From Ostrea edulis (Eukaryota), in contig NC_079166.1 in the NCBI RefSeq assembly GCF_947568905.1, positions 53,940,001 to 54,004,000 on the forward strand: 64,000 nt of DNA. The letters are read 5' to 3'. Below, piece after piece: positions 29,173-57,194 of the stretch. Made by a program: the position numbers and the translations under genes. The stretch's first letter is position 1. Each line of letters opens with the position of its first letter. A model generated the notes under the pieces. It ran no database searches. It worked only from the letters and a program-made list of their open reading frames with translations, and was not told where the DNA came from.

Positions 29173-32034
29173 CTACTCAGTTTCCTGTAGAAGTTTGAGT
29201 ACGTACTTAATGAAATATTGTATTTTGACACCGTTTTCCTCCAAAATACTTGAACCTAAAACATTATGGCGGGGGTTAAAAAAGGACGGGACGAATCGAT
29301 TAGAGAGCCACTCGTCGCATTTGTTAAAAACACTTTTTACCACATCAGTATCACAGCCTTTGCATTTATTTGCGATATGTTTGGACACAGCGTCTGTTTT
29401 GCATTTATCTGCGATATGTTTAGACGGAGCCTTGAGTACAAGATGCTCTAGTGGATCTCTCATGTATAAAATTTTCTCCAGAACAGTTTGGGTACTTTCT
29501 CGGACTACCCTTTCTTCAATGGTATGAAGGAAAGCCATTTTAAGAATATATGATGGAAACATGTTTCCCACTTCTTCGTACATCTCGAACTCCTCTTCAG
29601 AAGACATACTATCACATCGGCTTCGATAATAATTCTTCTCTTCTTCGTAATTACCGAAGCTAACAAGGGGACAAACAGGCAAACTGATCAACGATTTGGC
29701 AGCGATGTAACTGTTTCGGATATGTGGAAGGCATCTTTTCATTATTGTTGTTTCCACGAGTGACAAGGAGCATCGCCAAAGGTTTTCGTCTCCATGACTC
29801 GTCATTTTGGGAACAGCGAGACATGGCAGACGCAGTTGATCTGGATCAAGAAGTTTAGAACTGATTCGTGATTTGTTTGGCCAAGACGGTAGGCGCACCG
29901 CTGGAACGAAATCGACGTTGATTTCTAAACTTTTATATTTGGAACCTCTCCAAATCAAAATTACTTTTGGATCGTTGCTAATGTCCTTAATCAATAACCG
30001 GTCGTCTTTGGGGAAATTTTCACTGAAAACGATATTGGACACACGCTGCGTAAATGTTTGAAACATCATATAGTTTGGAATCATCTTCGATTCCAGCTCT
30101 GTAAGTTCCGAGTACGGGTAGCTCGTCTGCTTCTTCAGAAAAATTAGAGTGTAGTCTGATACAGAAGACTGGGTTTCTTCAAAATCAACACCTTCCTCCA
30201 GGACTTCATGCTTTTCAGTTTCTTTATCAGGAATAAGATGAAAACTTTCTATTACATCACCCATCTCATGTTGTGGATAGATATTCTCACTGAGTTCATC
30301 GAAACAAACAACGTAATCAAATTCGTCCGGATATAGAGTTTTAGTCCCTTCAGAAGAGCTTCCAGCATAGTATACTGTACATCGCAGTTTTGGATCACTT
30401 TCAGATAGGTATCTCGCAGCATTTATTGCAAATTCATCAATGACACTACGGATTTCGTTGGCCTCGGATTCGTCGTACAAAATTCCTGTTGGTGATTCCG
30501 ATATTAAAGAGCTAAGATACTCATCCAATTCTCCGGGTTCCCTCAAATTCTCATTTGAATCTAATATATCTTGTAATGCTTTCAGCTGTAATAACCTATT
30601 AGAGTACTTTGAGTATGTCTTCATTTTCATATTTTGATGAGATTCTCTGCCATGGTCTTGAAAAACTTCCAGAACGTCAAAGCTTGATCGATATTCCGCG
30701 ACATCGTATGCAGTTTTCCCACAGGAATCTTGACACTCCATGTTGCATCCTTCTTTGAACAGGATATATGCAACAGACGATTTGTTATTCCATGCAGCAA
30801 AATGGAGTGGAGTAGATTGGTATATATCTTCTGCATTAATATCTGCTCCTTTCTGTATAAGTAATTCCAAGACACAATCCCAGCCGTTTTCCGCAGCGAT
30901 ATGTATTGGTTGTTTTTTAACCGAATCCTTCATGTTTACATCAGCCCCTAGATCAACTACCGCTTCTACTAGTTTCTTGTTGTTTTTCATAACAGCAAGA
31001 TGAAGGACTGTTTGTCCCCAAAGATCTTGTTCATTCACGTTAATTCCCATGTTTATCAGGTATTTTAGCACATCTGCAGCATCTTCTCTGTCTACGATGT
31101 AATGTAGAAGACCCTGTTTTCTGCTATCCTTAACGCTGAGCATACATCCTTTCTTCACGAGGCACACTAGAATCTGAATAGGTATATCACGAATGGCAAG
31201 GTGCAAGATGGTCTGACCAATTGCAGTTCTTAAATTTGCTGCCTGTTCGTTAACAATAAGACAATCAATAAATTTCCGGGACACCTCTTCGGCATCATCG
31301 GAACATCCTCTAGATTTTTCCACGAAGTGGTGTACTGGGGTTAGACCTTGTAAGTCTAAATCAGACAACGAAGCTCCACTTTTGATTAATACATTGATAG
31401 TTTCATATTTCTCAAGGAAATAATTCGTGGTAGCTAAATGCAACGGAGATCTATCTTGCGAATCTTTGCAATTTACACTTGCACCCCTTCCAACAAGTGT
31501 TCGAATCAAATTTGAACCGTGTGGTTCTTTCATGAAAGATGAGCAGAGAGTATGTAGGGCTGTCTGGCCTTTAGCATTTGTGTGATGTATATCGACGTCA
31601 GCAGACAAATAAAATTCCACCAAAGTTTCATTTCCTAACATGATCGCTCTCTGCAATGGAGTGTCTCCGAATTCATCGTTAGCATGCAGATCACCGTTGG
31701 ACTGAACCAGCAGCCGAGCCGAGACTAGATCTCTAACTACTAGTAATGGGTTGTATTTTGTATTGACAAGTGCTCCATTTTGCAGTAAGGTTTTGACTAC
31801 TTTTGTGTACCCTTTCTTAGTTGCAATATAAAGAGCTGTCAAGCCGTCGCCATCTTCAGCGTTGACATCACATCCGCCTGATATAAGAATTTTTAGTTGA
31901 GCCTCGTTTCCATCTCTAGCTACTCGATGAAGGTTGGGAGAGTCTAATGTCTCATCATCTTCAAGCACTTGTTTCATAAACTGGCCCAACTTGGCAAACG
32001 GCTTATAGGTCTCATTTGTCCTGTTGTTCTCCAT
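29173..32034 (-). CDS. Ankyrin-repeat cGAS-like receptor (about 13 ANK repeats + Mab-21/cGLR nucleotidyltransferase), 953 aa, single coding exon
   Basis: ANK consensus repeats over the N-terminal half; then YAGSSSEGTKTLYPDEFDYV, INVDFVPAV, LAVPK, WRCSLSLVE, PSYILKMAFL, PSFFNPRHNVL. ATG at 32034 directly follows a tttctctctgcag acceptor. Confidence 0.9.
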   Translation of the reverse strand: MENNRTNETYKPFAKLGQFMKQVLEDDETLDSPNLHRVARDGNEAQLKILISGGCDVNAEDGDGLTALYIATKKGYTKVVKTLLQNGALVNTKYNPLLVVRDLVSARLLVQSNGDLHANDEFGDTPLQRAIMLGNETLVEFYLSADVDIHHTNAKGQTALHTLCSSFMKEPHGSNLIRTLVGRGASVNCKDSQDRSPLHLATTNYFLEKYETINVLIKSGASLSDLDLQGLTPVHHFVEKSRGCSDDAEEVSRKFIDCLIVNEQAANLRTAIGQTILHLAIRDIPIQILVCLVKKGCMLSVKDSRKQGLLHYIVDREDAADVLKYLINMGINVNEQDLWGQTVLHLAVMKNNKKLVEAVVDLGADVNMKDSVKKQPIHIAAENGWDCVLELLIQKGADINAEDIYQSTPLHFAAWNNKSSVAYILFKEGCNMECQDSCGKTAYDVAEYRSSFDVLEVFQDHGRESHQNMKMKTYSKYSNRLLQLKALQDILDSNENLREPGELDEYLSSLISESPTGILYDESEANEIRSVIDEFAINAARYLSESDPKLRCTVYYAGSSSEGTKTLYPDEFDYVVCFDELSENIYPQHEMGDVIESFHLIPDKETEKHEVLEEGVDFEETQSSVSDYTLIFLKKQTSYPYSELTELESKMIPNYMMFQTFTQRVSNIVFSENFPKDDRLLIKDISNDPKVILIWRGSKYKSLEINVDFVPAVRLPSWPNKSRISSKLLDPDQLRLPCLAVPKMTSHGDENLWRCSLSLVETTIMKRCLPHIRNSYIAAKSLISLPVCPLVSFGNYEEEKNYYRSRCDSMSSEEEFEMYEEVGNMFPSYILKMAFLHTIEERVVRESTQTVLEKILYMRDPLEHLVLKAPSKHIADKCKTDAVSKHIANKCKGCDTDVVKSVFNKCDEWLSNRFVPSFFNPRHNVLGSSILEENGVKIQYFIKYVLKLLQETE

Positions 32035-32999
32035 CTGCAGAGAGAAATCGAACAATTGACTATTCGTTCAACTGACGTTTTGTGTGGAATCAATTCATTA
32101 TCAAGACTGAAACAGGTGCTATGTGTTAGTGCTCTGTAAGACGTCACATAATATACCATTTCATTGAACAATCTACTTGCTTACACGTTCTAGCTTGTAC
32201 TATCTTTTGAATTGAGTAATACATGCATGTAGATGTGATCACATAACTCCTACACTTCGACATCACCATACCATCCAGACGTCGTGTCATTTATCCGACC
32301 GATTTACACTAGAACCGAACAGGCCTTGACTGTGCTGTCATGAACGGCATTTGAGATTCTCATTTGGTCGGAAAATGCGTCATATCATACACAGACTAAG
32401 GGCTAGCGAAGAAAGTGTATTAATAGTTCCTGTCTTGAACAGCAGGGATAGTTTGTGAAAATCACTCTAAAATAATTTTAGATGTGCCAAAGAAAACTTA
32501 ATATTCTTCGCTTCAAAACGTTTCTACCTATAAATTACAAATGTGCCAATTCGGATGGAATGAAAACCGATTTCCTTACACACTTTCTAAAATACGCTAA
32601 ACATGAGATGCATTCCACGTAGTCAATTTGAAAGACCTGAAGATGATATCCGGAATAATCGACTTTGGTCTGTTCTAGCGGTATCAAATTAAAACATTTA
32701 GTACTTCATTTGGAATACCCCTGTGTTTCTATTTTGATTCATAAAGACCTCGATAGTCAAGTAGAAATGGAAAGTGTATGAATCATCATGTAAAGTATAA
32801 GAACGTACTATGACGAAGAGGGCGGGGGTGGACAATGCAATGCTCTTTTGAGTTTCACGAAGTCTTGTTATCTTTAATATAGAAAGGTTAGGTAATTGTT
32901 TCCTGTATATAGAATTTATGATTAAAGTCCAAATGTATAAAGCAATATAAAGCTTAGGCTGGTTCATTACCTATCACAAACTGGACACCCTTTGCATTT

Positions 33000-33310
33000 A
33001 TTGTGTGCATGGTTAATCATTTGTCACGTGATGCGGTGATAGAGTATGGCTCGGTATCCGATTCATTGTGTGTGGTTAATCATTTGTCACGTGATGCGGT
33101 GATAGAGTATGACCCGATATCCGATTCATTGTGTGTGGTTAATCATTTGTCACGTGATGCGGTGATAGAGTATGACCCGATATCCGATTTATTGTGTGTG
33201 GTTAATCATTTATCACGTGATGCGGTGATAGAGTATGACCCGAGACCCGATTTATTGTGTGTGGTTAATCATTTGTCACGTGATGCAGTGGTAGAGTATA
33301 CCCGATTTCT
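33000..33310. repeat. 63-bp tandem repeat x5, each unit with CACGTG
   Basis: ggttaatc at 33011, 33074, 33137, 33200, 33263. Confidence 0.95.
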
Positions 33311-33320
33311 ACACACTGGT

Positions 33321-33484
33321 TAACCTGTATCAATCCGCCGATATATCAGAATACCTCTTATAATCTGTATCAATCCGCCGATATATCAAAATACCTCTTA
33401 TAATCTGTATCAATCCGCCGATACATCAGTATACTGCTTATAACCTGTATCAATCCGCCGATATATCAGTATACCGCTTATAAC
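33321..33484. repeat. 40-bp tandem repeat x4
   Basis: taa(c/t)ctgtatcaatccgccgatatatcag at 33321, 33361, 33401, 33441. Confidence 0.95.
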
Positions 33485-33890
33485 ATGACGCGAAGCACCG
33501 TTATGATAAACTATTTATTTTATGCCATTAGTCATTTACTTTCTAAATTATTTTGGAAGTTACACCTATAAATTGTTACATTGAAAACGTTTATTCAAGG
33601 AATGGAAGTTGGAAATTCTAGGTATGTCAAAATTATGTTCTTATCAAGAATTGTTCTAAATGGAGATTTGAGTTACCAAGTTTCATAAATAATGAAACAA
33701 ATGAGGCTGGATTATTACCCAGACTTATTCAATAATGGAAATCAAACTTTATTTGTCTTCGTGATCGGTCTGTCTTTTCGGAAAGCATGTTATTGGAATA
33801 ATACCAATAGATATGGATATATACATATGTATACCATAAAACAAATACTTTTAACTAATCAAATTACAAAATGATTATGGCTTTGATAGA

Positions 33891-35168: not shown

Positions 35169-36660
35169 CTAGTGGAAAAAAGAAACTGTGCATTATCTAA
35201 TATATGAAAAAATAATTTTAAAAATAACAATGAACAAATTTTATTTTTTGTAATTCTGTTAACAAATGTATTCCTTACAACATTTCATAATCCACTAATG
35301 TTAACGTCGAATAACGTCAATTTTAGCACACTCGAAAGACACTGGTATTCGAACTTAAATTAACAAAGTTAATAACGCGTGTGACCACCAATTGCATTTA
35401 CGCATGCTTGACAACGGCGCCTCATTGATGCCACTTAAGTGTTCAGAAATGCTTGAGGGATGTTGTTCCATATGTTGGTTAAAGCCTGGCCTAAATCAGC
35501 CAATGTCACCGGCTGATTTGGTAAACGGCGTAGAAGTCGTTCCATTTCATCCCAGACGTGCTCGATCGGCGATAAATCGGGGAAAACAGCTGGCCAAGGC
35601 AAGACATCAACATTCTGTTGAACAAAAAAGTCCCTGACTACACGTACAACATGTGGCCTTGCGTTGTCTTGCTGCAGAGTGATGTGATTTTGCTGTCTCT
35701 GTATGAAGGGTATCACATGGCGCTGAATAATTTCGTCTCGATAGCGTACGCTGGTGAGATTTCCATTGACAATTTGTAGAGGGGTCCTTCCACGTGCTGT
35801 TATCCCATCCCACACCATAACGCTACCTCCACCGAATTGTCGACGTTGCACAAGCGTCCTGGTACCGCTCCCCAACGCGACGATACACTCTACAACGGCC
35901 GCCACTGCTATCCAAATGAAATCTGGATTCATCAGTGAACAGAATATTGGCCCAGTCCTGTATTTTGAATCGAAGATGTCGTCTGCACCACGCTAGTCTA
36001 GCGATACGATGACGTTGAAGCAGTATTGGGTGCACCGATGGACGTTTTGGTCTGATGTTGTGCTCGCGCAGACGATCACGTACAGTTCTTGGACTGATTG
36101 GTCGAAGTCCAGGAATGCTACGAGCAGTCAGATTTGCTGTCTGGAAACGATTTCTCAGGTGCACAAGTCTAATGTGGTTGTCTTGTTGACGCGGCGTTAT
36201 ACGTGGACGCCCAGAATGTGATCGATCCCGAGTGTTACCCGATTATTGGAAACGTCTTCATAATGACTGGATGGTCTTCCGATGAACTCCAAAGTGTCTT
36301 GCTACGATATTTTGTGCCATTCCAGCTTGAAACATCCCAACATCACGATTACGTTGGTTTTCGCTGAGTAGTGGCATGACAGAAGGGTAAATTGTGTCAA
36401 AACTAAAGTGCTTTCCTTAACTAATAGTGTCTAAACAAACCTTTTACACTTCTTACTCCAAATAGTATTGGCCAGTATAACTCGTGCGTATGAACACTTC
36501 AATAAACAACATGAATAAGCCCGTGCATCTGAGTCGGGTAGTACCTGATATTGTTAAAAAAAAACATCACCTTTATCGATTGTTTAGATTTTATAAACAT
36601 GAACAATAAATATAGAAAAATTATACTAAATTTTATGATGCTGTATCTTTTTTCCTCTAG
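35169..36660 (-). mobile_element. Tc1-family (DD34E) transposon with a decayed transposase (ATG 36377 to TAA 35369)
   Basis: FTDESRF, QQDNARPH, PDLSPIE with 34-residue D-E spacing; SGRPR linker; internal stops and frameshifts; imperfect TIRs ctagtggaaaaaagaaac / gtatctttttcctctag, both flanked by TA. Confidence 0.92.
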
Positions 36661-37105
36661 TATATATACCTGTAGCTAGGAAACCACATGATTTCCCGCT
36701 ATTTTACTGAGGTAGCGTAAAGTAGTTTGAAACCGTTTGATCCAACTTTTCCTTTATAAATTTCTCCGAGAAGCATAAGCGTTGAATCCAGTTAATTTCT
36801 ATAAACTGGTATTTGGATATTGAGCAATGAATATGCAAAACTGTGGCTTACCAATGAAGAAAACTAATTGTGTACGACGATGTAGTCAGAATTATAAGAT
36901 GGTGTCATGTAGTCATCAGCGAGTGATATTCTAATAGGAGTAGGGACAAAAATCTTTGCTCACTGTAAATTTATTCATTTTGCAGTAAACGTGTTCGCCG
37001 TCCTTCATTAATTTTGAACCACAATATATCTTTATTTTCAGAGTGGTTTGTCTTTTCCATGCGTAACATTTTGGACGAGTGGACAATATAAAAACAGTAT
37101 ACATT

Positions 37106-40100
37106 ATGGAGGACTCTGATAGTGACAATGATTGGAATTGGATGGAATCACTGGATCCTATACAACAACATTGGGCCGAAGAGAACAAAACATTTGTTCC
37201 TACAAAAGCATCGGCATTTATTTCTGAAAAACTGCTAACACATGACAGAATTATTATAACAGGGTCAGCGGGATCAGGCAAATCTGCCATAGCGCAACAC
37301 ATCGCTCTCAAATATGCCATGGAGAATAAACGGATTTCCTACATCAATGCCTTGGACGAGATTGAAGAAAGAATTCCGAATATGGCAGGAACCGATATAG
37401 ACATATTTGTTATTGATGACCCCATAGGGAAATATCGTTTCGATCCATTGGCCTTTAGATGGTGGCGACGTCAGCGGAAACAGCTGAAATACTTCTTAAG
37501 ACGTGGACGAAAAAGAGAGAAGGTTGCTGAAGATATCAGAGTCCTTCTGACTTGCAGATCGGATCTTATAGATGACGATTCGTCATTATTCTTTAAAGAT
37601 TATACAATGATCAATATTGATGAAGATTCATTAGCCCTGACAAATGACGAGAAAGAGAACATTTTGAAGTCTCATATCAGTGTATCAGACTTGGGTGAGA
37701 ACGATATCAAACTTATTTCAGAATCAACTAAAGCATTTCCAACAATATGCCAGACTGTTGGATGCAATGAAAATTTTCAGGCTAACATAAACACATTTTT
37801 TCAAAATCCCTCCGAATTGATCAGAAAAGAAGTCCTACATTTGAAAGAAAATGCTAAAGAAAAATATCTGGCGCTGTTTTTGATTGTGATATTCAATAAC
37901 TCGTTTGTGCAAGATGATTTTTTGTTAGATTGCCAAGAGAATGTTGTTAATGATGATGAAAATGATGATGATGACAATGGAAGATTGGCTGACATTAACA
38001 AAGGAATACTTACTGATATGATGACAAAATTTGGGTTTTCGGAGACAACCTCTGCTCGGTCTATTCTAAGTAGTATGGAGACTTTGAACGGACCATTTCT
38101 AAAGAATATAGACGGTACTTTTCAGTTCCAAAATAGTTTGTTGTTTCAAACATGTGTTCACCTATTCTGTACAGAGGTTTACGATATATTCTTAGAATAT
38201 TGTGACAGTTCATTTTTTCGGAAATATGTCAAGACCGATCTTCAAAACAAAGGAAATTTGTTTGTGGATATATATCTAGAGGACAACTTCATTGGCGGAT
38301 TTGTAAAGAGAATAGCAAGTGACATTTATGATGGAACATTTTTGGATGTATTCTTGTGCCCTTGGACAAATGATGAAAGAGTGATAATGGCAATGGAGAA
38401 AATTTTGATTACCAAAACCACAAAGGATATTATGGAGTTGACTGTGAATCAAGCACTGTCAAAAGAGGATTCAGGACTGAAACCTTATAGCAAAAAGGAA
38501 CGAATTGTGCTGAGGGGATTTTCAAAACTTGATTTCATAATATATGGAGACAAAATATCGCCGATAGTTCTGTCATTGATTTTCAATCATAACAGAATAT
38601 TTTCTGCTATGTTTGATAAACTGAAACTCGATCAAATCTCTAGTAGCTGTCTAAAAAAGGAACCACTTTTAAGTGCTGCTTGTGCTAATGGTAACAAACA
38701 TTTAGTGGGGAAAATATTGGAATTTTATGGAAAAGCCTTGCCAAATGTTATGTGGAATGACAACGAAAAGATTCACGCCTTTCATATAGCTGCTAATTTC
38801 CACCACGTTGATGTTATGGAAATGTTTCTAGCCAAGAAGCAAGACGTAAATATCACAACAACTCTGAACGAATCTCCATTGTTTCTAGCCCTCTCTGTTG
38901 AAATGTGGTATGTAAAAACCTCGAAGCAAACCGACGAGGAAAGAAAGCAGGACGGGTTGTTGGAAACTCTCAGTCTTCTTATTAAGAATGGGGCAAATGT
39001 TAACACTCACTCAGAAAACAGAGAACATCCTTTGACTTTGGCTTGTAGCAAAGTGAATATCAAAGCCACGCAATTGTTACTTGAACATGGAGCAGACGTT
39101 AACAAAGTAGGTATCTCTAAAATTGGCGGATTACACTTTGCTGCGATGCATGGACATGCTGACCTCGTTAATTTATTGTTAGAAAAAGGAGCAGATATCA
39201 ACTTACGTACGTCAAAAAACCAAACTGCCTTATATTTCGCAGCAAGGAAAGGTCATCCTGCTATTGTCGAGATTCTTCTTTCCAGAGGAGCAGATAAAGA
39301 ACTGAAAACTCATACATGGAATTCACCATTCTTTGTGGCTTGTAGATATGGTCACGAAAAAGTAGTAAACCTTCTTTTGAAATTTTTCTCAGAAGACGTA
39401 AAGAAATCAGATAGAGATGAATGTCCTCCTTTACACGCAGCGATTGAATCTGGTAAGGTTGAAATCGTAAATTTGCTTCTCGAAAATGGCGCTAAGGCAA
39501 ACGCCAGAGAGGAAAGGTCTATGAAAAGTCCGCTCTATTTGGCAGCTGGTTTAGGAAAATTGAGCATTGTCAAATTGTTGTTACAGAAAGGAGTGTCTAT
39601 AGACATTCAAACAAAGGATGGGTGTACACCACTTATCAAGACATGTAAAAATGGATTTTGTTTAGTTGCACAATGTTTGCTTGCAAACGGAGCAAACGTG
39701 GATATTTGTGATAAACGCAAATGGACTCCACTGTTGTATGCTTCAAAATATGGTCATTTGGACATTGTTAAACTCTTGCTAGAAAGTAAAGCAGATATGA
39801 GTTTGAGTACCGGAAATGGAGAAGATCCGTTGTACATCGCGTCTTCTTGGGGGCATGAAGAAATAGTGAAAGAACTTCTAAAGCGGAAAGCAAATGGCAA
39901 TACCTTGAGCACGGGTCTAAGAACACCACTCTCTGTGGCTGTGAAGAAAGGTCATAAAAAGGTGTTGGAAGTCCTTCTTCTCAATGGTGCTAACGTGAAT
40001 CAACGAGTAGACCACAATGATACTTCCCTTATCATTGCAGCAAGAGAAAACTTGCTTGACATTGTAAACATACTGCTGAAAAACGGTGCTGATATTACAT

Positions 40101-41251
40101 TGAGTGATTGTGAAATGGAAAATGCATTGCACAATGCATGCCAAACAGCCAGCAACGATGTTATTGAGACACTGTTAGATGCTGGACTCGATATAAACGG
40201 CCCTCAATGTGAGGGATATTCTGCTTTACATTTGGCATTGATGAACCACAACAGACAAGCGGCTTTGTGTCTATTAGAGCATAATTCAGATGTTAATATG
40301 ATATCTAATGGGAAAACCCCAATTTCCCTTGCTTGTGAAACTGGATATTATGATGTAGTAGAAGCACTTTTGAATAAAAATGTTGAAGTTAATCCAGAAA
40401 ATGATAGTAGACCGTTGACACCCGATCCCCTGAGCATAGCAGCTGGGAATGGCTCTCTACAAATAGCACAAACTTTAATTCGATCCAAAGCCATTGTCAA
40501 CTCTCGAAATTCTGAAGGCGAAACTCCGTTATTTCAAGCCACTAAACAAGGACATTGCAGGTTGATGAAATTGCTCATTGATAACGAAGCTCGTGTTAAT
40601 ATCCAAGATAAATATGGAAAAACATGCCTACATCTGAGTGTGTGCAAACATAAAAGTGATGATATGGTATTGCTCTTATTGAAGAACAACGCAGCTGTGA
40701 ATGTGTGCACCAAAGACGGAATCACCGCTCTGATGATGGCTATCGCGGGAAAACAAGGAGTGTCCGAGAAACGGATCCGTTCTATCATTGAACACGGCGC
40801 AAATGTTAATGCACAGGATACATTTGGAAAAACTGCACTTCACCGAGCAGCAGAGTTGGGTTTGGGATCTGTCATAGAAACACTGTTAAATAATGACGCC
40901 AATGTTAATACATGTAATCAAGATGGCGAAAGTGCTCTATTCATTGCGACTAAGAGCGGACATGCAAATGTTGTTCAGTTACTTCTACAGAACAATGCAG
41001 AAGTCAAAGTACTTTCAAATTCCGGTGAAAGTCCATTCGATATCGCCAATCGAATGGAATTTCACAACATTTCCAAACTTCTACAGGAATCTGCAGCTAT
41101 CAAAGCAGATAGAGGTGATTCCCCAAAGTTAGATTCGAAAGAAGATTCTATAACTTCTAAGGAGCGGAAACTGGTATTGGTCAAATGTAACCCTTTGGGA
41201 CCTGCTCTGCCAAGAAAACGAAGTCCCTATAAGATACCAGTTCGACGATAA
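37106..41251 (+). CDS. nSTAND3-type STAND NTPase + more than 20 ankyrin repeats, 1381 aa, no N-terminal effector domain, single coding exon
   Basis: W..E.K.FVPT, Walker A GSAGSGKS, Walker B IFVIDD, sensor-1 LLTCR, helical region, long ANK array. First ATG is 37106; in-frame TAA at 37064; candidate acceptor ttttcag at 37041. Confidence 0.88.
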   Translation: MEDSDSDNDWNWMESLDPIQQHWAEENKTFVPTKASAFISEKLLTHDRIIITGSAGSGKSAIAQHIALKYAMENKRISYINALDEIEERIPNMAGTDIDIFVIDDPIGKYRFDPLAFRWWRRQRKQLKYFLRRGRKREKVAEDIRVLLTCRSDLIDDDSSLFFKDYTMINIDEDSLALTNDEKENILKSHISVSDLGENDIKLISESTKAFPTICQTVGCNENFQANINTFFQNPSELIRKEVLHLKENAKEKYLALFLIVIFNNSFVQDDFLLDCQENVVNDDENDDDDNGRLADINKGILTDMMTKFGFSETTSARSILSSMETLNGPFLKNIDGTFQFQNSLLFQTCVHLFCTEVYDIFLEYCDSSFFRKYVKTDLQNKGNLFVDIYLEDNFIGGFVKRIASDIYDGTFLDVFLCPWTNDERVIMAMEKILITKTTKDIMELTVNQALSKEDSGLKPYSKKERIVLRGFSKLDFIIYGDKISPIVLSLIFNHNRIFSAMFDKLKLDQISSSCLKKEPLLSAACANGNKHLVGKILEFYGKALPNVMWNDNEKIHAFHIAANFHHVDVMEMFLAKKQDVNITTTLNESPLFLALSVEMWYVKTSKQTDEERKQDGLLETLSLLIKNGANVNTHSENREHPLTLACSKVNIKATQLLLEHGADVNKVGISKIGGLHFAAMHGHADLVNLLLEKGADINLRTSKNQTALYFAARKGHPAIVEILLSRGADKELKTHTWNSPFFVACRYGHEKVVNLLLKFFSEDVKKSDRDECPPLHAAIESGKVEIVNLLLENGAKANAREERSMKSPLYLAAGLGKLSIVKLLLQKGVSIDIQTKDGCTPLIKTCKNGFCLVAQCLLANGANVDICDKRKWTPLLYASKYGHLDIVKLLLESKADMSLSTGNGEDPLYIASSWGHEEIVKELLKRKANGNTLSTGLRTPLSVAVKKGHKKVLEVLLLNGANVNQRVDHNDTSLIIAARENLLDIVNILLKNGADITLSDCEMENALHNACQTASNDVIETLLDAGLDINGPQCEGYSALHLALMNHNRQAALCLLEHNSDVNMISNGKTPISLACETGYYDVVEALLNKNVEVNPENDSRPLTPDPLSIAAGNGSLQIAQTLIRSKAIVNSRNSEGETPLFQATKQGHCRLMKLLIDNEARVNIQDKYGKTCLHLSVCKHKSDDMVLLLLKNNAAVNVCTKDGITALMMAIAGKQGVSEKRIRSIIEHGANVNAQDTFGKTALHRAAELGLGSVIETLLNNDANVNTCNQDGESALFIATKSGHANVVQLLLQNNAEVKVLSNSGESPFDIANRMEFHNISKLLQESAAIKADRGDSPKLDSKEDSITSKERKLVLVKCNPLGPALPRKRSPYKIPVRR

Positions 41252-42143: not shown

Positions 42144-44549
42144 AGTCTCAGTAATCGGATACTAATATTTAAAAAAATATGGAAAAAAAAATACAGAAAT
42201 CCTCCATAAAACTTTAGCGCTTTCATTACATCTTCAGAAGCTTTACAAAAATGTATACATAGCAGTATCATAGTAACAGTGATTATGACGTCAAAGTAAG
42301 CGGAACGTTAAATGTCTATATTGTGACGTCATGGATAATGTAAAACAATGATCTGGAAAAAGTACGGGAAAATCATAGGCAATTATAAAAGACTATTAAA
42401 AGTTTTGGCTTTAGAATACCAATGAAATGTTTTTCTTTTTCCCGTCTCTGAATAGCACTGGCACATCTGAGTTTATAAAATGGGAAAATGTTAAATCGTT
42501 TTTTACCACACGTTTCCAGGTGTGCACTTAACTGGATTTGTCTGTATTCAGGTGTACTGATGTGCTGCTTATGTACACGTACACGGGCACGGAGAGTGTT
42601 GCCAGTTTCACCAATGTAATATTCCTTGCATCCAGGACATGTGATGGCGTATATGACATCCTTTGTATCGCATGACATGTTAGCATTAACTTTAAATTCT
42701 CGTCCGTTAAAATTATAACTGGTCCCTTCTGTAATGTAGTCACATGTACCGCATCGAGGGTGAGTACTCTTTGACATTGTATAAGTACGGTCATCTAATT
42801 GGGAGGAACAAAGTATTCTCTTAAGACTTTTGGGCTGGCGTTTACTGCTAATAAAACGACAGTTCTTGTATATGCCTTTTGTTTGTTCATCTTCCCTAAG
42901 TAGCTTGTTTAATTCATAAACAATTGAATTGATGTTTTGATTTCTCGGATTATAAGTGTGTACAAATGGTATTATTTCTCCGTCATTAGCACATCGTGTG
43001 TTTGAAAGTAGCTGTATCCTATCGCACTCCTTAGCCTTCATTATTCCATCGTCTACAAGTTGTTCTGGGTATTTTGGCTTAATAAATACAATTTTAATTC
43101 CTCCAAGCGGATATCCCTCGTATCGATATTGCTGACAATGGTACAAATCCTTCTTGCGAGATTATATGGTATAGCTGTTTTAGTATGGTGGGGATGGCAC
43201 GATCCGAAATGCAGGTATTGGTGGGTATCTGTGGGCTTATAATAAATATCCGTATTTAAGCTGGTATTTTCTTTTAATATAAGAACGTCAAGAAATGGCA
43301 TTTGCGTATCATCTGTTTCCATCGTGAATTTGATATCCGAGTTCATTTGGTTTAGTAGATCGTAAAACTCCAATAACTTATCGACATCATCATCCCACAA
43401 GATAAAACAATCATCTAAATATCTCTTCCATTTAGACTGTATATTATTTGCAAATTCTGCCCCCCACAACGTTCATAGTTGATCATGTAACTTATGTTCT
43501 AGATAACCTAGGGTTAATGTTGCATAGGTAGGTGCGACGTTTGTCCCCATTGCAGTTCCCTTAGCTTGGAGGTAATGATGGTCTGAAAAAGCAAACGAAT
43601 TGTTGTCTAGAACTAATTTTAGTGCTTCTAAAATAAAATCCTGTTGGAATCTGTCATTAAGTACATCGGGATATTTTTCCATCCAGAATTTTACCGCTTC
43701 CAATCCTAATTCTGTAGGAATATTAGTATATAAACTAATAACATCCAGAGTGACAAGTTTAGTGTTGGAGGTGACCTCAGTTTAGGTAAATGATTTATAA
43801 AATCCAGATCGTCTCTTACAAAGCTGAGTACTTTTTGGCAATATGATTTTAAAAGTATATCCAATAAATGACTCAGTCTCTGCGTTGAAGAGTTTGGTCC
43901 TCCTACTATGGGTCTGAAGGATAAGTCAGCTGGATCCAGACAAGTAATACATACACTATTTTGATTTGCTATGGCATTCTTAATAATTTTAAACTTGTGA
44001 ACTTTAGGTAAACCATAGAATTGACTCTCTCGGAATTCAAAGTTTGTCAGGTAGTCCTGTTCTTTATCTCTTAAACCTTCCGATAGTGGTCCATATACTA
44101 GATTTTTAATTTTTGTAATGGTTTTCTTCTCATGACAATTGTGTAGTCTATAATAAAATTTGTAGTCTTGTAACATTTGTAAAATTTTATATTTGTAGAA
44201 ATCCTTATTCATTAAGACAACTCCACCTCCTTTATCGGCCTCTTTGATAATGATAGTTGGGTCATCAGGGAGGTTTTTAAGAGCATTTTCCTCTTCCGTA
44301 GAGAGATTAGATTTAATATTCCTGGGTTTGTTTGGAAAATGAATATTTTCTAATGTGTCGCAAACGGCATCCAAAGTTCTATTTCTTCCTCGTTTTGGAT
44401 TAAACTTTGATTTATTTCTTACAAGGTTTGTTGGCTCTGCCTCTGTAGACTCGGATTCAGATTCACTGGTCTCACTTTCATGAAAATATTCATATAGTCT
44501 GAGTCGCCGAGTATAGACTTTAACATCCATTTTAAGCTCTTGATTATTG
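42144..44549 (-). mobile_element. Penelope-like retroelement (RT + C-terminal GIY-YIG, Neptune-like), 5'-truncated and disrupted
   Basis: RT motifs LVTLDVISLYTNIP, QAKGTAMGTNVAP, KRYLDDCF; GIY-YIG VIYAITCPGCKEYYIGET; Cys-rich linker; stops and frameshifts. Clade is tentative. Confidence 0.92.
42206..42246 (-). ncRNA. Minimal type I hammerhead ribozyme in the PLE 3' region (copy 1)
   Basis: GUAAAGCUU-CUGAAGA-UGUAAU-GAAA-GCGC-UA-AAGUUUUAU; stem I retained through G-U pairs. Confidence 0.7.
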
Positions 44550-48120: not shown

Positions 48121-49118
48121 ATTATAAGCCCACAGATACCCACCAATACCTGTATTTCGGATCGTGCCATCCCCACCATACTAAAACAGCTTAACCATAT
48201 AATCTCGCAAGAAGGATTTGTACCATTGTCAGCAATATCGATACGAGGGATATCCGCTTGGAGGAATTAAAATTGTATTTATTAAGCCAAAAATACCCAG
48301 AACAACTTGTAGACGATGGAATAATGAAGGCTAAGGAGTGCGATAGGATACAGCTACTTTCAAACACACGATGTGCTAATGACGGAGAAATAATACCATT
48401 TGTACACACTTATAATCCGAGAAATCAAAACATCAATTCAATTGTTTATGAATTAAACAAGCTACTTGGGGAAGATGAACAAACAAAAGGCATATACAAG
48501 AACTGTCGTTTTATTAGCAGTAAACGCCAGCCCAAAAGTCTTAAGAGAATACTTTGTTCCTCCCAATTAGATGACCGTACTTATACAATGTCAAAGAGTA
48601 CTCACCCTCGATGCGGTACATGTGACTACATTACAAAAGGGACCAGTTATAATTTTAACGGACGAGAATTTAAAGTTAATGCTAACATGTCATGCGATAC
48701 AAAGGATGTCATATACGCCATCACATGTCCTGGATGCAAGGAATATTACATTGGTGAAACTGGCAACACTCTCCGTGCCCGTGTACGTGTACATAAGCAG
48801 CACATCAGTACACCTGAATACAGACAAATCCAGTTAAGTGCACACCTGGAAACGTGTGGTAAAAAACGATTTAACATTTTCCCATTTTATAAACTCAGAT
48901 GTGCCAGTGCTATTCAGAGATGGGAAAAAGAATAACATTTCATTGGTATTCTAAAGCCAAAACTTTTAATAGTCTTTTATAATTGCCTATGATTTTCCCG
49001 TACTTTTTCCAGATCATTGTTTTACATTATCCATGACGTCACAATATAGACATTTAACGTTCCGCTTACTTTGACGTCATAATCACTGTTACTATGATAC
49101 TGCTATGTATACATTTTT

Positions 49119-52660: not shown

Positions 52661-55600
52661 ATGTGTGTAAAAATGCCCAGGTGTGGATGTGGACATCGCT
52701 TACCTTCCGCAGACTCGGGGGCAGAGGATGAGAACAGTGACGACGAAAATATGCCATCTTGGATAAAATTTTGGGAACAAGAAGATAGAAAATTCGTTTC
52801 AACGAGGGCCTCCAAACTTGTAGAGGATAAATTACGAAATTGTAACAGGGTTATCATACTGGGAGAGACTGGATGTGGTAAATCTGCCATTGCTCTAAAC
52901 ATAGCATTAAAGTATAGGTCTCGGAAGTGGAAAGTTGTGATGGTGAAGAATATCAGAGACTGCTCCTGTGAAAGAAAACTCTGTTTTTTTTCATTATCAA
53001 CGATCCGATAGGAAAAACTGTATTGGACGAAAAATCTTGTAGACAGTGGTACTTGCAGAAGAATTTGCTGAACCGTTATTTTTCGACAAAAAGGCAGAAT
53101 GAAAAAAAGGTCAAAACTCCAAAAGTTATTGTGACTTGTAGGTCGAGTCTTGCTGATGAAGACGTCAGTTACTATTTCAAGCAATTTTCTCTGATCAATA
53201 TGGATGAAAGGGGCTTTGAATTGGCTAAAGAGGAAAAAGAAAAGATATTAAAGAAGCATACAGATTGTTCACAATGTACCGATGCCGATGTCGATGAACT
53301 ACTGAAAACTGAGAAATCATTTCCTTTAATATCTGAACTGCTTTCTGCCAGTAAAACATTTGAAGGAAATATACTTGCGTTTTACAGAGAACCTTTTGTA
53401 GAAATCAAAAAAGAAATTCTATCTTTAAAAGACATTTCTAAAGAACAGTGTATGTGTTTGTTTATACTAAACGTGTGCGGAAATCGATTAACAAAGGAAA
53501 ACTTTGAAGAGAAAGAAGATGACTACAAGCATATTGAGAGTATTCACGATGACAGAGAGAATGGGGTAGTCAATAATGACCGAAAAAGTGAAAAGGGAAA
53601 CAATGAGAAAGACATTGAGAAGTCCAACGACTGCAACGGGGAAAGAATAGACAATTATAAAAATGACAACAAAAATGATAACGAGGATGGCAAGAACAAT
53701 AATGATAACTATGAACTCGATAAACAGATGATAAATGACTTATTGAAAGCTTTCAAGCTTCCTGAAAGCACATCCAAAAGAACTCTCTTCGAAAGTTTAA
53801 ATCAGTTTAGAGGTCATTACTTCGTGAAACGAATTAAAGATATTTTTCAAATCACAAATGGTTCTTTTCTGCGAGCATTGACTCATATATTTTGTACAAG
53901 CTTTCCAGCGCAATTCTTAAAATACTGCCCAAGTAATTTTTTTCGTACTTTGACAACATCAACTGCACAGTCGGATATCATTCCAAAAGTCCAATTACAA
54001 GATAATTATATCAATTTATTTGTGGATATAATTCAGGAAGATATAAAGACTGGCACATTTTTGGATGTTTTTCTGAGTCCTTGGATCCGGGATAAAAGCG
54101 TCTTGACCAATCTGCTTTTGCGATTCGAATCAATGCCATATGAAAAGATGATTGAGTTGACTCTCAACTCCAAATTAAATGCTCATCTGAAGATTGCAAA
54201 GCCCAAGGTACGAAAACAAATGACTGGCTTTTCTCGACTGGATTTGATTGGACTAAGTAAGGAAGTATCTCCAATAATTCTGTCACTTGTATTAAACCTG
54301 GATGACCTTTATCACGCCATGTTCACTTTGATAAGAAATAATGCAAATGGATCTAAATACTTGAATAATGCCCCTCTAATGAGTGCATGTTGTGTCAACG
54401 GACGAGAAGATCTTGCTAGGCTAGTTTTAGATATTGCAAATGACAGAAAAAGATGCTGGAGTAAACGAGAAAATATCTACCCCATGCACATTGCTGCCAA
54501 CTTCCTCAACACTGACATTTTAGACCTTGCTTTAGTTGGAGAGCATGATGTGAACATGACTACACGAACCATGGAATCACCTTTTTTCTTGGCAGCAGCA
54601 GCCGGAAAATACGCCCTCCAAAATATCCCCTGGACTCTCAAGCAAGAATTGAGCAACTCCTCTAAAACTTACGATGAATTGGTCGAGGAGAACCGTTTAA
54701 AGATCCTTACTCTTCTTTGGCAGAGAGGTGCAGATGTAAATATTCATCCAGATAAATCATCGTCTGCCCTTGCATATGCCTGTCAAAAAGGAGATATAGA
54801 TACAATCCAGTTTATGATTAAGAGTGGTGCGAGTGTGAAAGAAACTAATGATGAAAACTTTGGCGCACTACATTTTGCTTCAGAAGTAGGAAATATTGAA
54901 ATTGTTCAGCTGTTGTTGTGCAGTGGTGCAGATATCAATATCTGTACCTCAAAGGGTTTGACGCCGTTATATCTAGCATCATTCAATGGACATGCTGATG
55001 TAGTGGATATGTTTCTTTCTAAAGGAACCACCCAAGTATTGAAGGATAAATCAGAATGTAATCCATTCTTCGTAGCCTGCAAGCATGGTCATGAAAGGAT
55101 TGTCGAAATGTTTTTAGAATATGATCCGTTCGTGCATTGCAAATTGCCTGATAACACTTCAGCTTTATTGGCGGCTGTTGATAATGGACACAAGGAAATT
55201 GTTGAATTGCTTCTAAAAAAAATGGCGCTGATGCAAATATTGTTCAAAACAATAGTAAAATAAGCCCTTTATATTCTGCTTCCGGTTCTGGATATGATGG
55301 TATTTTGGAATTATTACTAAAACCCAGTGAGAGTGTCGACATGGAAACGATGAATGCGAATATTCCATTGGATATTGCATCACAAAATGGTCACCATTCT
55401 ATCGTTCAGACATTACTTGAAAATGGAGCAAATGTCAATCACTACACTTTAGAAAGGAAATCTCCATTGTTCCATGCAACTGAGAATGGTCATTATGATA
55501 TAGTGATGTTTCTATTGCAAAAGAAAGCAGAACTGAATTCCTGCACAAACAAAGGAAGAAATCCATTGATGCAAGCTTCATCTTGTGGATATGAAAATAT

Positions 55601-57194
55601 AGTTCGCGAACTTCTGAGTCATGGAGCTAATGTAAATGAAGCTGATGTCGAGGGAAGTACAGCACTTTATTTGGCCTCCGAAAATGGCCACATTGATATT
55701 GCAAAAGTGTTGTTGGCAAACAAAGCAGATGCTAGTCTGTGCAATGACGTTGGACTTACCCCACTGTATATTGCATCTCGATTTGGACATCATATAATTG
55801 TTCAAGAACTTTTGCAAAAGGATACCAAAATTTGTGGTACGTCCTCGAAAAACCCCCTACTAGCAGCGTCGTATTTTGGACATTACAAAACTGTTGACAT
55901 TCTTTTGCAAAACAGGGCAAATGTTAACGTACAAAATGACGACGGAGATACTCCTTTGATAACCGCGTCCAGAAAGGGATGGTGTGAAATCGTGAAAATT
56001 CTTCTGAAGTTTGAAGCTGATGTCAATCTTTATAATGAAGATGATGAAAATGCTTTACACTGCGCTTGTTTTATGGGTCATACAGACATTGTTAAGATAT
56101 TACTCGATCATGGTATGGATATCGATGGTCATGACGAATACACACCATTGCAGCAAGCTTTATTTGGGGAGCGTATGACTACTGCTTTGTTTCTGTTAGA
56201 TCATGTCGCAAATGCGAACATTGTCACCTATGGTACAAGTGCTCTTTATTTGGCATGTGATGCCGGATTCAAGGAACTGATGAATATTCTTTTGGAACTA
56301 AATGCAGACGTCAATCCAAAGAACCCTGATAATTCCCCTGCAGATTCTCCTCTTTTGGCTGCCATCAGAAATGGATCTTTTTACATTACAAAAGAACTTT
56401 TACGTCATGGGGCCAATATCATAAAAACGAACAGACATGGCGGCCAAAGTTTGTTAGCGATGGCTGTTGAGAACCAAAATCTTGGGATAGTGAAGTTACT
56501 CATTGAATATGGCGCTAATGTCAACGAACAAGATGAATATGGAACCACAGCTCTGCATGCAAGCGTTTATTATACAGACACTCTAGATTTCATGACAATA
56601 TTATTGAACAACAATGCCAATACGAATGTCAGGAACTATATTGGAACAACTCCATTAATGATGGCACTGCACAAAAATCCTGAGACGAAGGAACGAGTGC
56701 AGGCTCTCCTTACTCACGGAGCTGACATTAATGCCCGTGATAACTTTGGGTGTTTACCACTACACTCTGCTTGTAAATGGCCCGATGAACATGATGTTAT
56801 TCCATATCTACTAAATAATGGCGCTGACATAAATGCTCAGGATGAAAATGGAGAAACTGCACTTTATGTGACATCCTTTTATGGCTTTCTTGAGAATGTG
56901 AAAACACTTGTTCGATACGGAGCAGACATTAACCTTCACACGAGCGTTGGTCTCAGTCCACTTGATATTTCCATGCAAAACGGATATACAGATATCGAAA
57001 AATTTCTCAAACAAAATATGAACGAAGAGAAGAATAAAAGGGAAAAGAAAATATCTTCCAAATTGGAAAACAACAGTGTTTCTGTTTCACAAAGAGAGGT
57101 TGTTTTGGTTAGACAGAATGCTTTAGCGCCAGTTCTTGGAAGGAGAAACAACTCTATGAAACTTCAGAAGACATGGCAGCAAAGAAATTTTTAG
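52661..57194 (+). CDS. Second nSTAND3-type NTPase + more than 20 ankyrin repeats (~1511 aa if repaired); two frameshifts at homopolymers (assembly error or young pseudogene)
   Basis: ORFs 52661-53011, 53023-55263 and 55305-57194 join into one protein paralogous to 37106-41251 (GETGCGKS, FIINDPIGK, IVTCR, FLDVFLSPW); shifts at T8 52984-52991 and A8 55215-55222. Confidence 0.85.

Follow-up and report, generated by a model that had tools for sequence, protein, structure and literature searches.

The stretch of the Ostrea edulis genome analysed here (contig NC_079166.1, positions 53,940,001 to 54,004,000; 64,000 nucleotides (nt), hereafter the window) carries, on its minus strand, a gene for an ankyrin-fused cGAS-like receptor (ANK-cGLR), that is, an array of ankyrin repeats joined in one polypeptide to a Mab-21/cGAS-like nucleotidyltransferase. 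An initial annotation of this DNA had placed such a protein at 29173-32034 without stating the strand, and the locus indeed holds one uninterrupted frame of 953 codons, read from the minus strand. The open reading frame (ORF) extends over 29173..32055 and counts 960 codons from a TTG, of which 953 remain from the first ATG at 32034, with no internal stop, and the translation is 100% identical across 953 amino acids (aa) to an NCBI-annotated protein encoded on a chromosome of 98.3 Mb. The gene is almost certainly intact. Its features, in window coordinates, are the following:

29173..32034, minus strand: complete coding sequence (CDS) of the ANK-cGLR, 953 aa, stop codon at 29173-29175, coding part intron-free (ORF and NCBI match)
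32035..32052, minus strand: probable 3' splice acceptor, a pyrimidine tract and CAG immediately 5' of the ATG (sequence inspection)
30649..31938, minus strand: ankyrin arm, 13 repeats, aa 33-462 (Pfam Ank_2, E 2.5e-66; 13 helix pairs in the full-length AlphaFold model)
30475..30648, minus strand: acidic linker from arm to enzyme, aa 463-520, predicted flexible (predicted local distance difference test score, pLDDT, below 50 in the full-length model)
29176..30474, minus strand: Mab-21/cGAS-like nucleotidyltransferase domain with its N-terminal spine helix, aa 521-953 (Pfam PF03281, AlphaFold, Foldseek, VIA-align)
30316..30363, minus strand: GS loop (G558, S559) and first two catalytic acids (E571, D573), in GSSSEGTKTLYPDEFD (family profile alignment to solved structures)
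30346-30363, minus strand: GSSSEG, aa 558-563
30316-30327, minus strand: DEFD, aa 570-573
30148..30273, minus strand: acidic N-lobe insert, predicted disordered, aa 588-629, ending in the conserved SVSDY (pLDDT below 50 in both models)
29899..29916, minus strand: VDFVPA, aa 707-712, with the third catalytic Asp, D708 (aligned counterparts: EISVDIILAL in pig cGAS, IDVDLVPAI in Cv-cGLR1)
29272..29778, minus strand: C-lobe nucleotide-contact motifs WRCSLSLVE (aa 753-761), SYILK (aa 828-832) and PSFFNPRHN (aa 916-924)
29761-29778, minus strand: WRCSLS, aa 753-758
29539-29553, minus strand: SYILK
29272-29289, minus strand: PSFFNP, aa 916-921
29359..29436, minus strand: tandem duplication of 39 nt that keeps the frame and adds 13 aa (SKHIADKCKTDAV / SKHIANKCK...) to a disordered loop of the C lobe (direct repeat; specific to this genome)
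29099..29104, minus strand: candidate polyadenylation signal AATAAA, about 70 nt past the stop (consensus match only)

The identity of the C-terminal half as a Mab-21/cGAS enzyme, proposed from its motifs in the initial annotation, is borne out by the fold. In the hidden Markov model search that had been suggested as a check, the ankyrin match is accompanied by Pfam Mab-21 (PF03281) over aa 562-766 at 26.5 bits, above the cutoff of 24.1. Structure prediction, the other computational check suggested, agrees: an AlphaFold model of the enzyme half alone (aa 485-953; pLDDT 73.7, predicted template modelling score 0.75) has the bilobal Mab-21/cGAS fold and retrieves cGAS and the oyster receptor Cv-cGLR1 with Foldseek at E 5e-12, and VIA-align superposes it across the catalytic domain on 326 of the 361 residues of mouse cGAS (Z 27.8, root-mean-square deviation 3.2 Å) and on 327 residues of Cv-cGLR1 (Z 25.3). 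At the sequence level, the solved cGLRs are distant (phmmer E 0.029; the structural alignments show 14-18% identity). Within this fold, the active site is complete, comprising the GS loop, the [E/D]h[E/D] pair and the third acid. In the profile alignment, GSSSEGTKTLYPDEFD falls on GSYYERVKISAPNEFD of pig cGAS, where the catalytically dead 4kb6 construct has NQFN, and every motif originally listed (GSSSEG, DEFD, VDFVPA, WRxSxS..E, SYxLK and PxFFxPxxN) could be located and aligned with the catalytic residues of cGAS.

Both halves of the protein are conserved. The closest named relatives are those of Saccostrea echinata (68% identity) and Magallana gigas/angulata (63-65%); the orthologues measure 929-950 aa, match the window protein from one terminus to the other and share its layout of ankyrin repeats (aa 33-462 in the window protein) and Mab-21 domain (aa 521-953 there) in one ORF, and a word search for standalone relatives of the enzyme half returned only fragments and other fused proteins. 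Among 26 relatives from oysters, scallops, mussels, Pinctada, corals and a crinoid, some of them about 31% identical, the GS, ExD, third Asp, WRxS..E and SY..K motifs are kept, the SY..K stretch being unaligned in Montipora, and PSFFNP is kept with minor substitutions; in the acidic N-lobe insert, E620, S626 and Y628 are invariant across relatives. Pairwise ratios of nonsynonymous to synonymous substitution rates (dN/dS) among oysters are 0.09-0.15 for the ankyrin arm and 0.05-0.11 for the enzyme half, rough values with saturated dS, and in the sister group of the oyster proteins, where dS is 0.3-0.6 and unsaturated, they are 0.28-0.40 and 0.22-0.30, respectively. Arm and enzyme half are both under purifying selection. 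Compared with the window, a related taxon shows 16 synonymous and 22 nonsynonymous differences, of which just two fall in the catalytic motifs, both synonymous, at S559 and G563.

The ankyrin arm had been estimated at about 13 repeats, and the full-length AlphaFold model gives exactly this number of helix pairs in aa 33-462, at a pLDDT of 85-95. The stretch that overlaps the linker behind it (aa 471-540) has a computed isoelectric point (pI) of 4.2. At the positions that serve for binding in DARPin-type arrays, mean pairwise identity is 0.58, as compared with 0.65 at the other ankyrin positions and 0.73 in the enzyme core. The binding face is thus nearly as conserved as the rest of the arm, a pattern that suggests a conserved partner; since no face of the arm is hypervariable, such a partner would account for the pattern better than an arms race against proteins of pathogens.

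From the perspective of charge, the enzyme half departs from cGAS. For linker and enzyme together, the pI is computed at 4.96 and the net charge at about -23 (pI 5.29 for the full-length protein), and the enzyme half lies between pI 4.6 and 5.6 in every relative computed (n = 21). The zinc thumb (H-x5-CC-x6-C), which in cGAS separates the catalytic core from the SYHVK helix, is not present: the aligned stretch, TIMKRCLPHIRNSY, contains no such insert and is followed by an acidic Ser/Glu-rich loop (aa 784-828) with low pLDDT in the full-length model. The Arg at the start of the cGAS spine helix contacts DNA; the corresponding position in the profile alignment falls in an acidic segment (DESEANE). 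Because the enzyme half is acidic family-wide, has no zinc thumb and starts its spine helix with acidic residues, sensing of dsDNA or dsRNA by the window protein appears unlikely. Receptors for such ligands are basic and offer them a long positively charged surface. Li et al. (2023, Cell; preprint PMC9980059) report a pI above 8.5 for the cGLRs that sense dsDNA or dsRNA, a basic range from which the window protein is far removed by its computed pI, and propose non-nucleic-acid, positively charged ligands for acidic cGLRs. The non-nucleic-acid input raised in the initial annotation is therefore favoured by the family-wide acidity and the lack of a zinc thumb, although the idea itself was already put forward in that paper.

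Neither the ankyrin-cGLR architecture nor the protein is new, the latter being already annotated. In Li et al. (2023), ANK-cGLR fusions are listed as a minor architecture of animal cGLRs (Fig. 1C, S2A and Table S2), and those of S. pistillata (Fig. 4C) are given a potential role in protein or ligand interaction, with none characterised. The window protein resembles this class in combining ankyrin repeats and a cGLR with a predicted complete active site in one polypeptide, in bivalves and corals; as compared with the class at large, its subfamily is fixed at 13 repeats and about 940 aa, with an intron-free CDS and with acidity both in the enzyme half and in an N-lobe insert. Cv-cGLR1 from Crassostrea virginica (PDB 8gjw), likewise an oyster protein and activated by dsDNA, shares the fold and the GS, ExD, D and PxFFxP motifs, but it is only about 17% identical over the crystallised catalytic domain, on which the two were compared, and is basic according to Li et al., whereas the enzyme half of the window protein has a pI of about 5. 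With mammalian cGAS the window protein shares the bilobal Mab-21 nucleotidyltransferase fold, the catalytic triad and the C-lobe nucleotide contacts; in contrast to it, the window protein lacks the zinc thumb and the basic DNA-binding platform, has an extra acidic insert, and carries an ankyrin arm where cGAS has a disordered basic N-terminus. Acidic auto-active cGLRs such as Pd-cGLR from Pocillopora damicornis (pI 5.0 in the account of Li et al.) resemble the window enzyme in charge, and a non-nucleic-acid, cationic ligand has been proposed for them; they are, however, single-domain proteins of demonstrated activity, while the window protein bears the arm and is a predicted enzyme. The gene thus has the structural and active-site features of a cGLR, and not those that define cGAS proper or the nucleic-acid-sensing cGLRs.

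Taken together, the best explanation, and one with somewhat better than even chances, is that the locus encodes a functional oyster ANK-cGLR with an acidic enzyme half, in which the arm is the likely input or regulatory module. The C-terminal half would most likely make a second messenger of the nucleotide type, probably a cyclic dinucleotide, which would probably be read by one of the STING proteins of the oyster; oysters encode several of these according to Li et al. (2023), and no STING gene lies within the 64-kb window. The 13-repeat arm on its flexible acidic linker would bind a conserved protein or another non-nucleic-acid partner and thereby control the activity of the enzyme. The mechanism proposed here is given a little less than an even chance.

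Several observations weigh against this interpretation. The Mab-21_C profile reaches 18.7 bits, under the Pfam cutoff, and an intact catalytic triad, as read from the sequence, does not by itself prove activity; of the 140 purified cGLRs that Li et al. (2023) screened, the text available reports activity for no more than a small fraction. The full-length model (pLDDT 66.5) contains no confident contact between arm and enzyme, with the linker disordered, so that arm-based sensing or autoinhibition is a proposal drawn from the domain architecture. No RNA library was found among the sequencing runs on record that match the gene. Three of these runs cover the gene and the intergenic DNA evenly, and are therefore taken as genomic; a fourth, which may be RNA and comes from a taxon with 95-97% identity, yields contigs only on 29067-31177, which is suggestive but no proof. 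The Logan contigs L001 and L011 follow the genomic sequence collinearly and thus show no splicing. Finally, a literature search retrieved no functional study of any ANK-cGLR after Li et al. (2023) and no paper on LOC105334528; a look for the accession of the M. gigas orthologue in the partial supplementary tables of Li et al. gave no hit, which carries little weight.

The alternative that survives best, unlikely as it is, retains an active enzyme but assigns to the arm a docking or scaffolding role in place of a sensory one, tethering the enzyme to a complex or a cell structure, with activation through induced proximity or through a cationic ligand that occupies the acidic groove. The conserved, not diversifying, binding face of the arm is compatible with it, as are the positively charged ligands that Li et al. 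(2023) propose for acidic cGLR grooves. A candidate for the docking partner is a gene next to the ANK-cGLR, the latter lying between this neighbour and CDC5L:

37079..41251, plus strand: nSTAND3 NTPase with ankyrin array, 1390-aa ORF, head-to-head with the ANK-cGLR (Pfam)

This neighbour has no recognisable effector domain. The same order and orientation recur in Saccostrea echinata (L002 2534-6682) and in Magallana angulata (L006 4432-8640), where the gap between the two genes is 1.36 kb, and the neighbour is orthologous in full length and collinear in both (56% identity in Saccostrea, 49% in M. angulata, by tblastn). The pairing is therefore conserved synteny across three oyster genera, and a functional link between the two genes is a bare possibility. 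On the other hand, CDC5L is syntenic as well, so that the two genes may be neighbours simply through general conservation of gene order; the neighbour was not found within 10 kb of the ANK-cGLR loci of the crinoid, scallop, Pinctada and unnamed relatives, in which the family is under purifying selection nonetheless; and the two ankyrin arrays share a generic 23-24% identity only. The last value also rules out that the arm was borrowed from the nSTAND3 gene.

The same pairing could be read as a two-gene immune module, in which the STAND protein would sense, oligomerise and recruit the cGLR as its missing effector, so that a nucleotide signal would pass to STING. This idea is quite improbable; if true, the module would be an animal counterpart of the bacterial pairings of a sensor with a CD-NTase, and a protein-triggered input to cGLR-STING signalling. 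The surroundings of the pair contain further copies and remnants. Saccostrea echinata has a tandem pair of ANK-cGLR paralogues (JAVQLB010000003.1, 11.93-11.98 Mb; 59% identity to each other) between the nSTAND3-ankyrin gene and CDC5L, and a 352-aa ankyrin-only gene between the two paralogues may be a remnant of a duplicated STAND partner. The window has a second nSTAND3-ankyrin paralogue at 52724-57194 on the plus strand, 33-43% identical to the first and spread over several frames, with two long ORFs (53023-55263 and 55305-57194), which makes it either broken or intron-bearing. Transposon remnants are represented by a DDE_3 endonuclease fragment between the head-to-head genes (35435-35932, minus strand) and by GIY-YIG ORFs at 42373-43146 (minus strand) and 48258-48935 (plus strand), which may be Penelope-like.

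A further alternative, improbable in its turn, is that the site looks complete and yet makes no cyclic dinucleotide: the protein would then produce linear 2'-5' oligonucleotides like OAS, transfer a nucleotide to a different acceptor, or have a non-enzymatic role as other Mab-21 proteins do. Pol-beta-type nucleotidyltransferases in general show the GSSSEGTK...DEFD pattern, the product type is not revealed by the sequence, and the low similarity to solved cGLRs noted above also fits this alternative. However, the top structural matches are cGAS and Cv-cGLR1 across the full domain, and there is no variation in WRxSxS..E and SY..K, the C-lobe motifs of cGAS type; both speak against it. An ordinary nucleic-acid-sensing cGLR with an accessory ankyrin arm is very unlikely: the activating ligands of cGLRs have so far all been dsDNA or dsRNA according to Li et al. 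(2023), but the conserved acidity of linker and enzyme, the absent zinc thumb and the acidic residues in place of the DNA-contacting Arg all speak against it. That the locus is an unexpressed or decaying gene copy is hardly credible, since the lack of an RNA library and the lineage-specific 39-nt duplication, which would fit decay, are set against an intact 953-codon frame, purifying selection and syntenic orthologues in three genera, the duplication moreover being in frame and inside a disordered loop.

With regard to the transcript, a non-coding exon upstream of the ATG is likely, because the ATG is preceded by a pyrimidine tract and CAG and because the Saccostrea gene model measures 4133 nt for a 950-aa product and is not collinear on translation. 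The 39-nt duplication is absent in all orthologues, and a contig of the related taxon skips 29359-29397. Tandem repeats adjoin the gene on both sides. Downstream, a satellite at 28213-29111 with alternating periods of 34 and 41 nt and a higher-order unit of 109 nt starts about 60 nt beyond the stop codon, and the short-read contigs all break within it, at 29067. Upstream, there are arrays with a 63-nt period at 33004-33318, which reads as a spurious 106-aa repeat ORF, and with a 40-nt period at 33321-33520.

The distribution of the subfamily outside oysters includes an unexpected member. A sister group, with full-length identities of 52-58% to the oyster proteins (54-62% for the enzyme part), comprises the crinoid Antedon mediterranea, a Tara metagenome scaffold (perhaps of the Tara Pacific expedition, to judge by its sample number) and several ENA contigs (L004 and L007 among the unnamed marine metagenome contigs), whereas the fusions of scallops, mussels and Pinctada are just 35-38% identical to the oyster proteins. 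An atlas search for the taxa behind the unnamed members returned generic Mab-21 clusters only. In the tree, the oysters join the sister group with full support; this clade sits among the bivalve sequences, and the corals fall outside. The Antedon gene is located on a chromosome-scale record (OZ206130.1; L003 10001-13202), flanked by intron-bearing RING and Sema genes, and lies between two direct repeats of about 96 nt (L003 7957-8052 and 13903-13997). DNA similarity among the sister-group loci stops about 80-100 nt beyond the CDS, and GC content, overall and at third codon positions (GC3), gives no signal for or against transfer. In the window, a check for mobile elements revealed no terminal repeats around the ANK-cGLR, only satellites. 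The crinoid similarity may stem from a horizontal transfer into that lineage, from bivalves, so far unsampled, as hosts of the unnamed contigs, or from paralogy with uneven rates.

For the many orphan cGLRs from bivalves and corals and the ligands that they sense, the subfamily described here is a well-defined test case, given its fixed 13-repeat arm, its invariant active site, its consistently acidic enzyme half and its clear orthologues in farmed oysters. It could show whether a protein or another non-nucleic-acid cue drives cGLR signalling.

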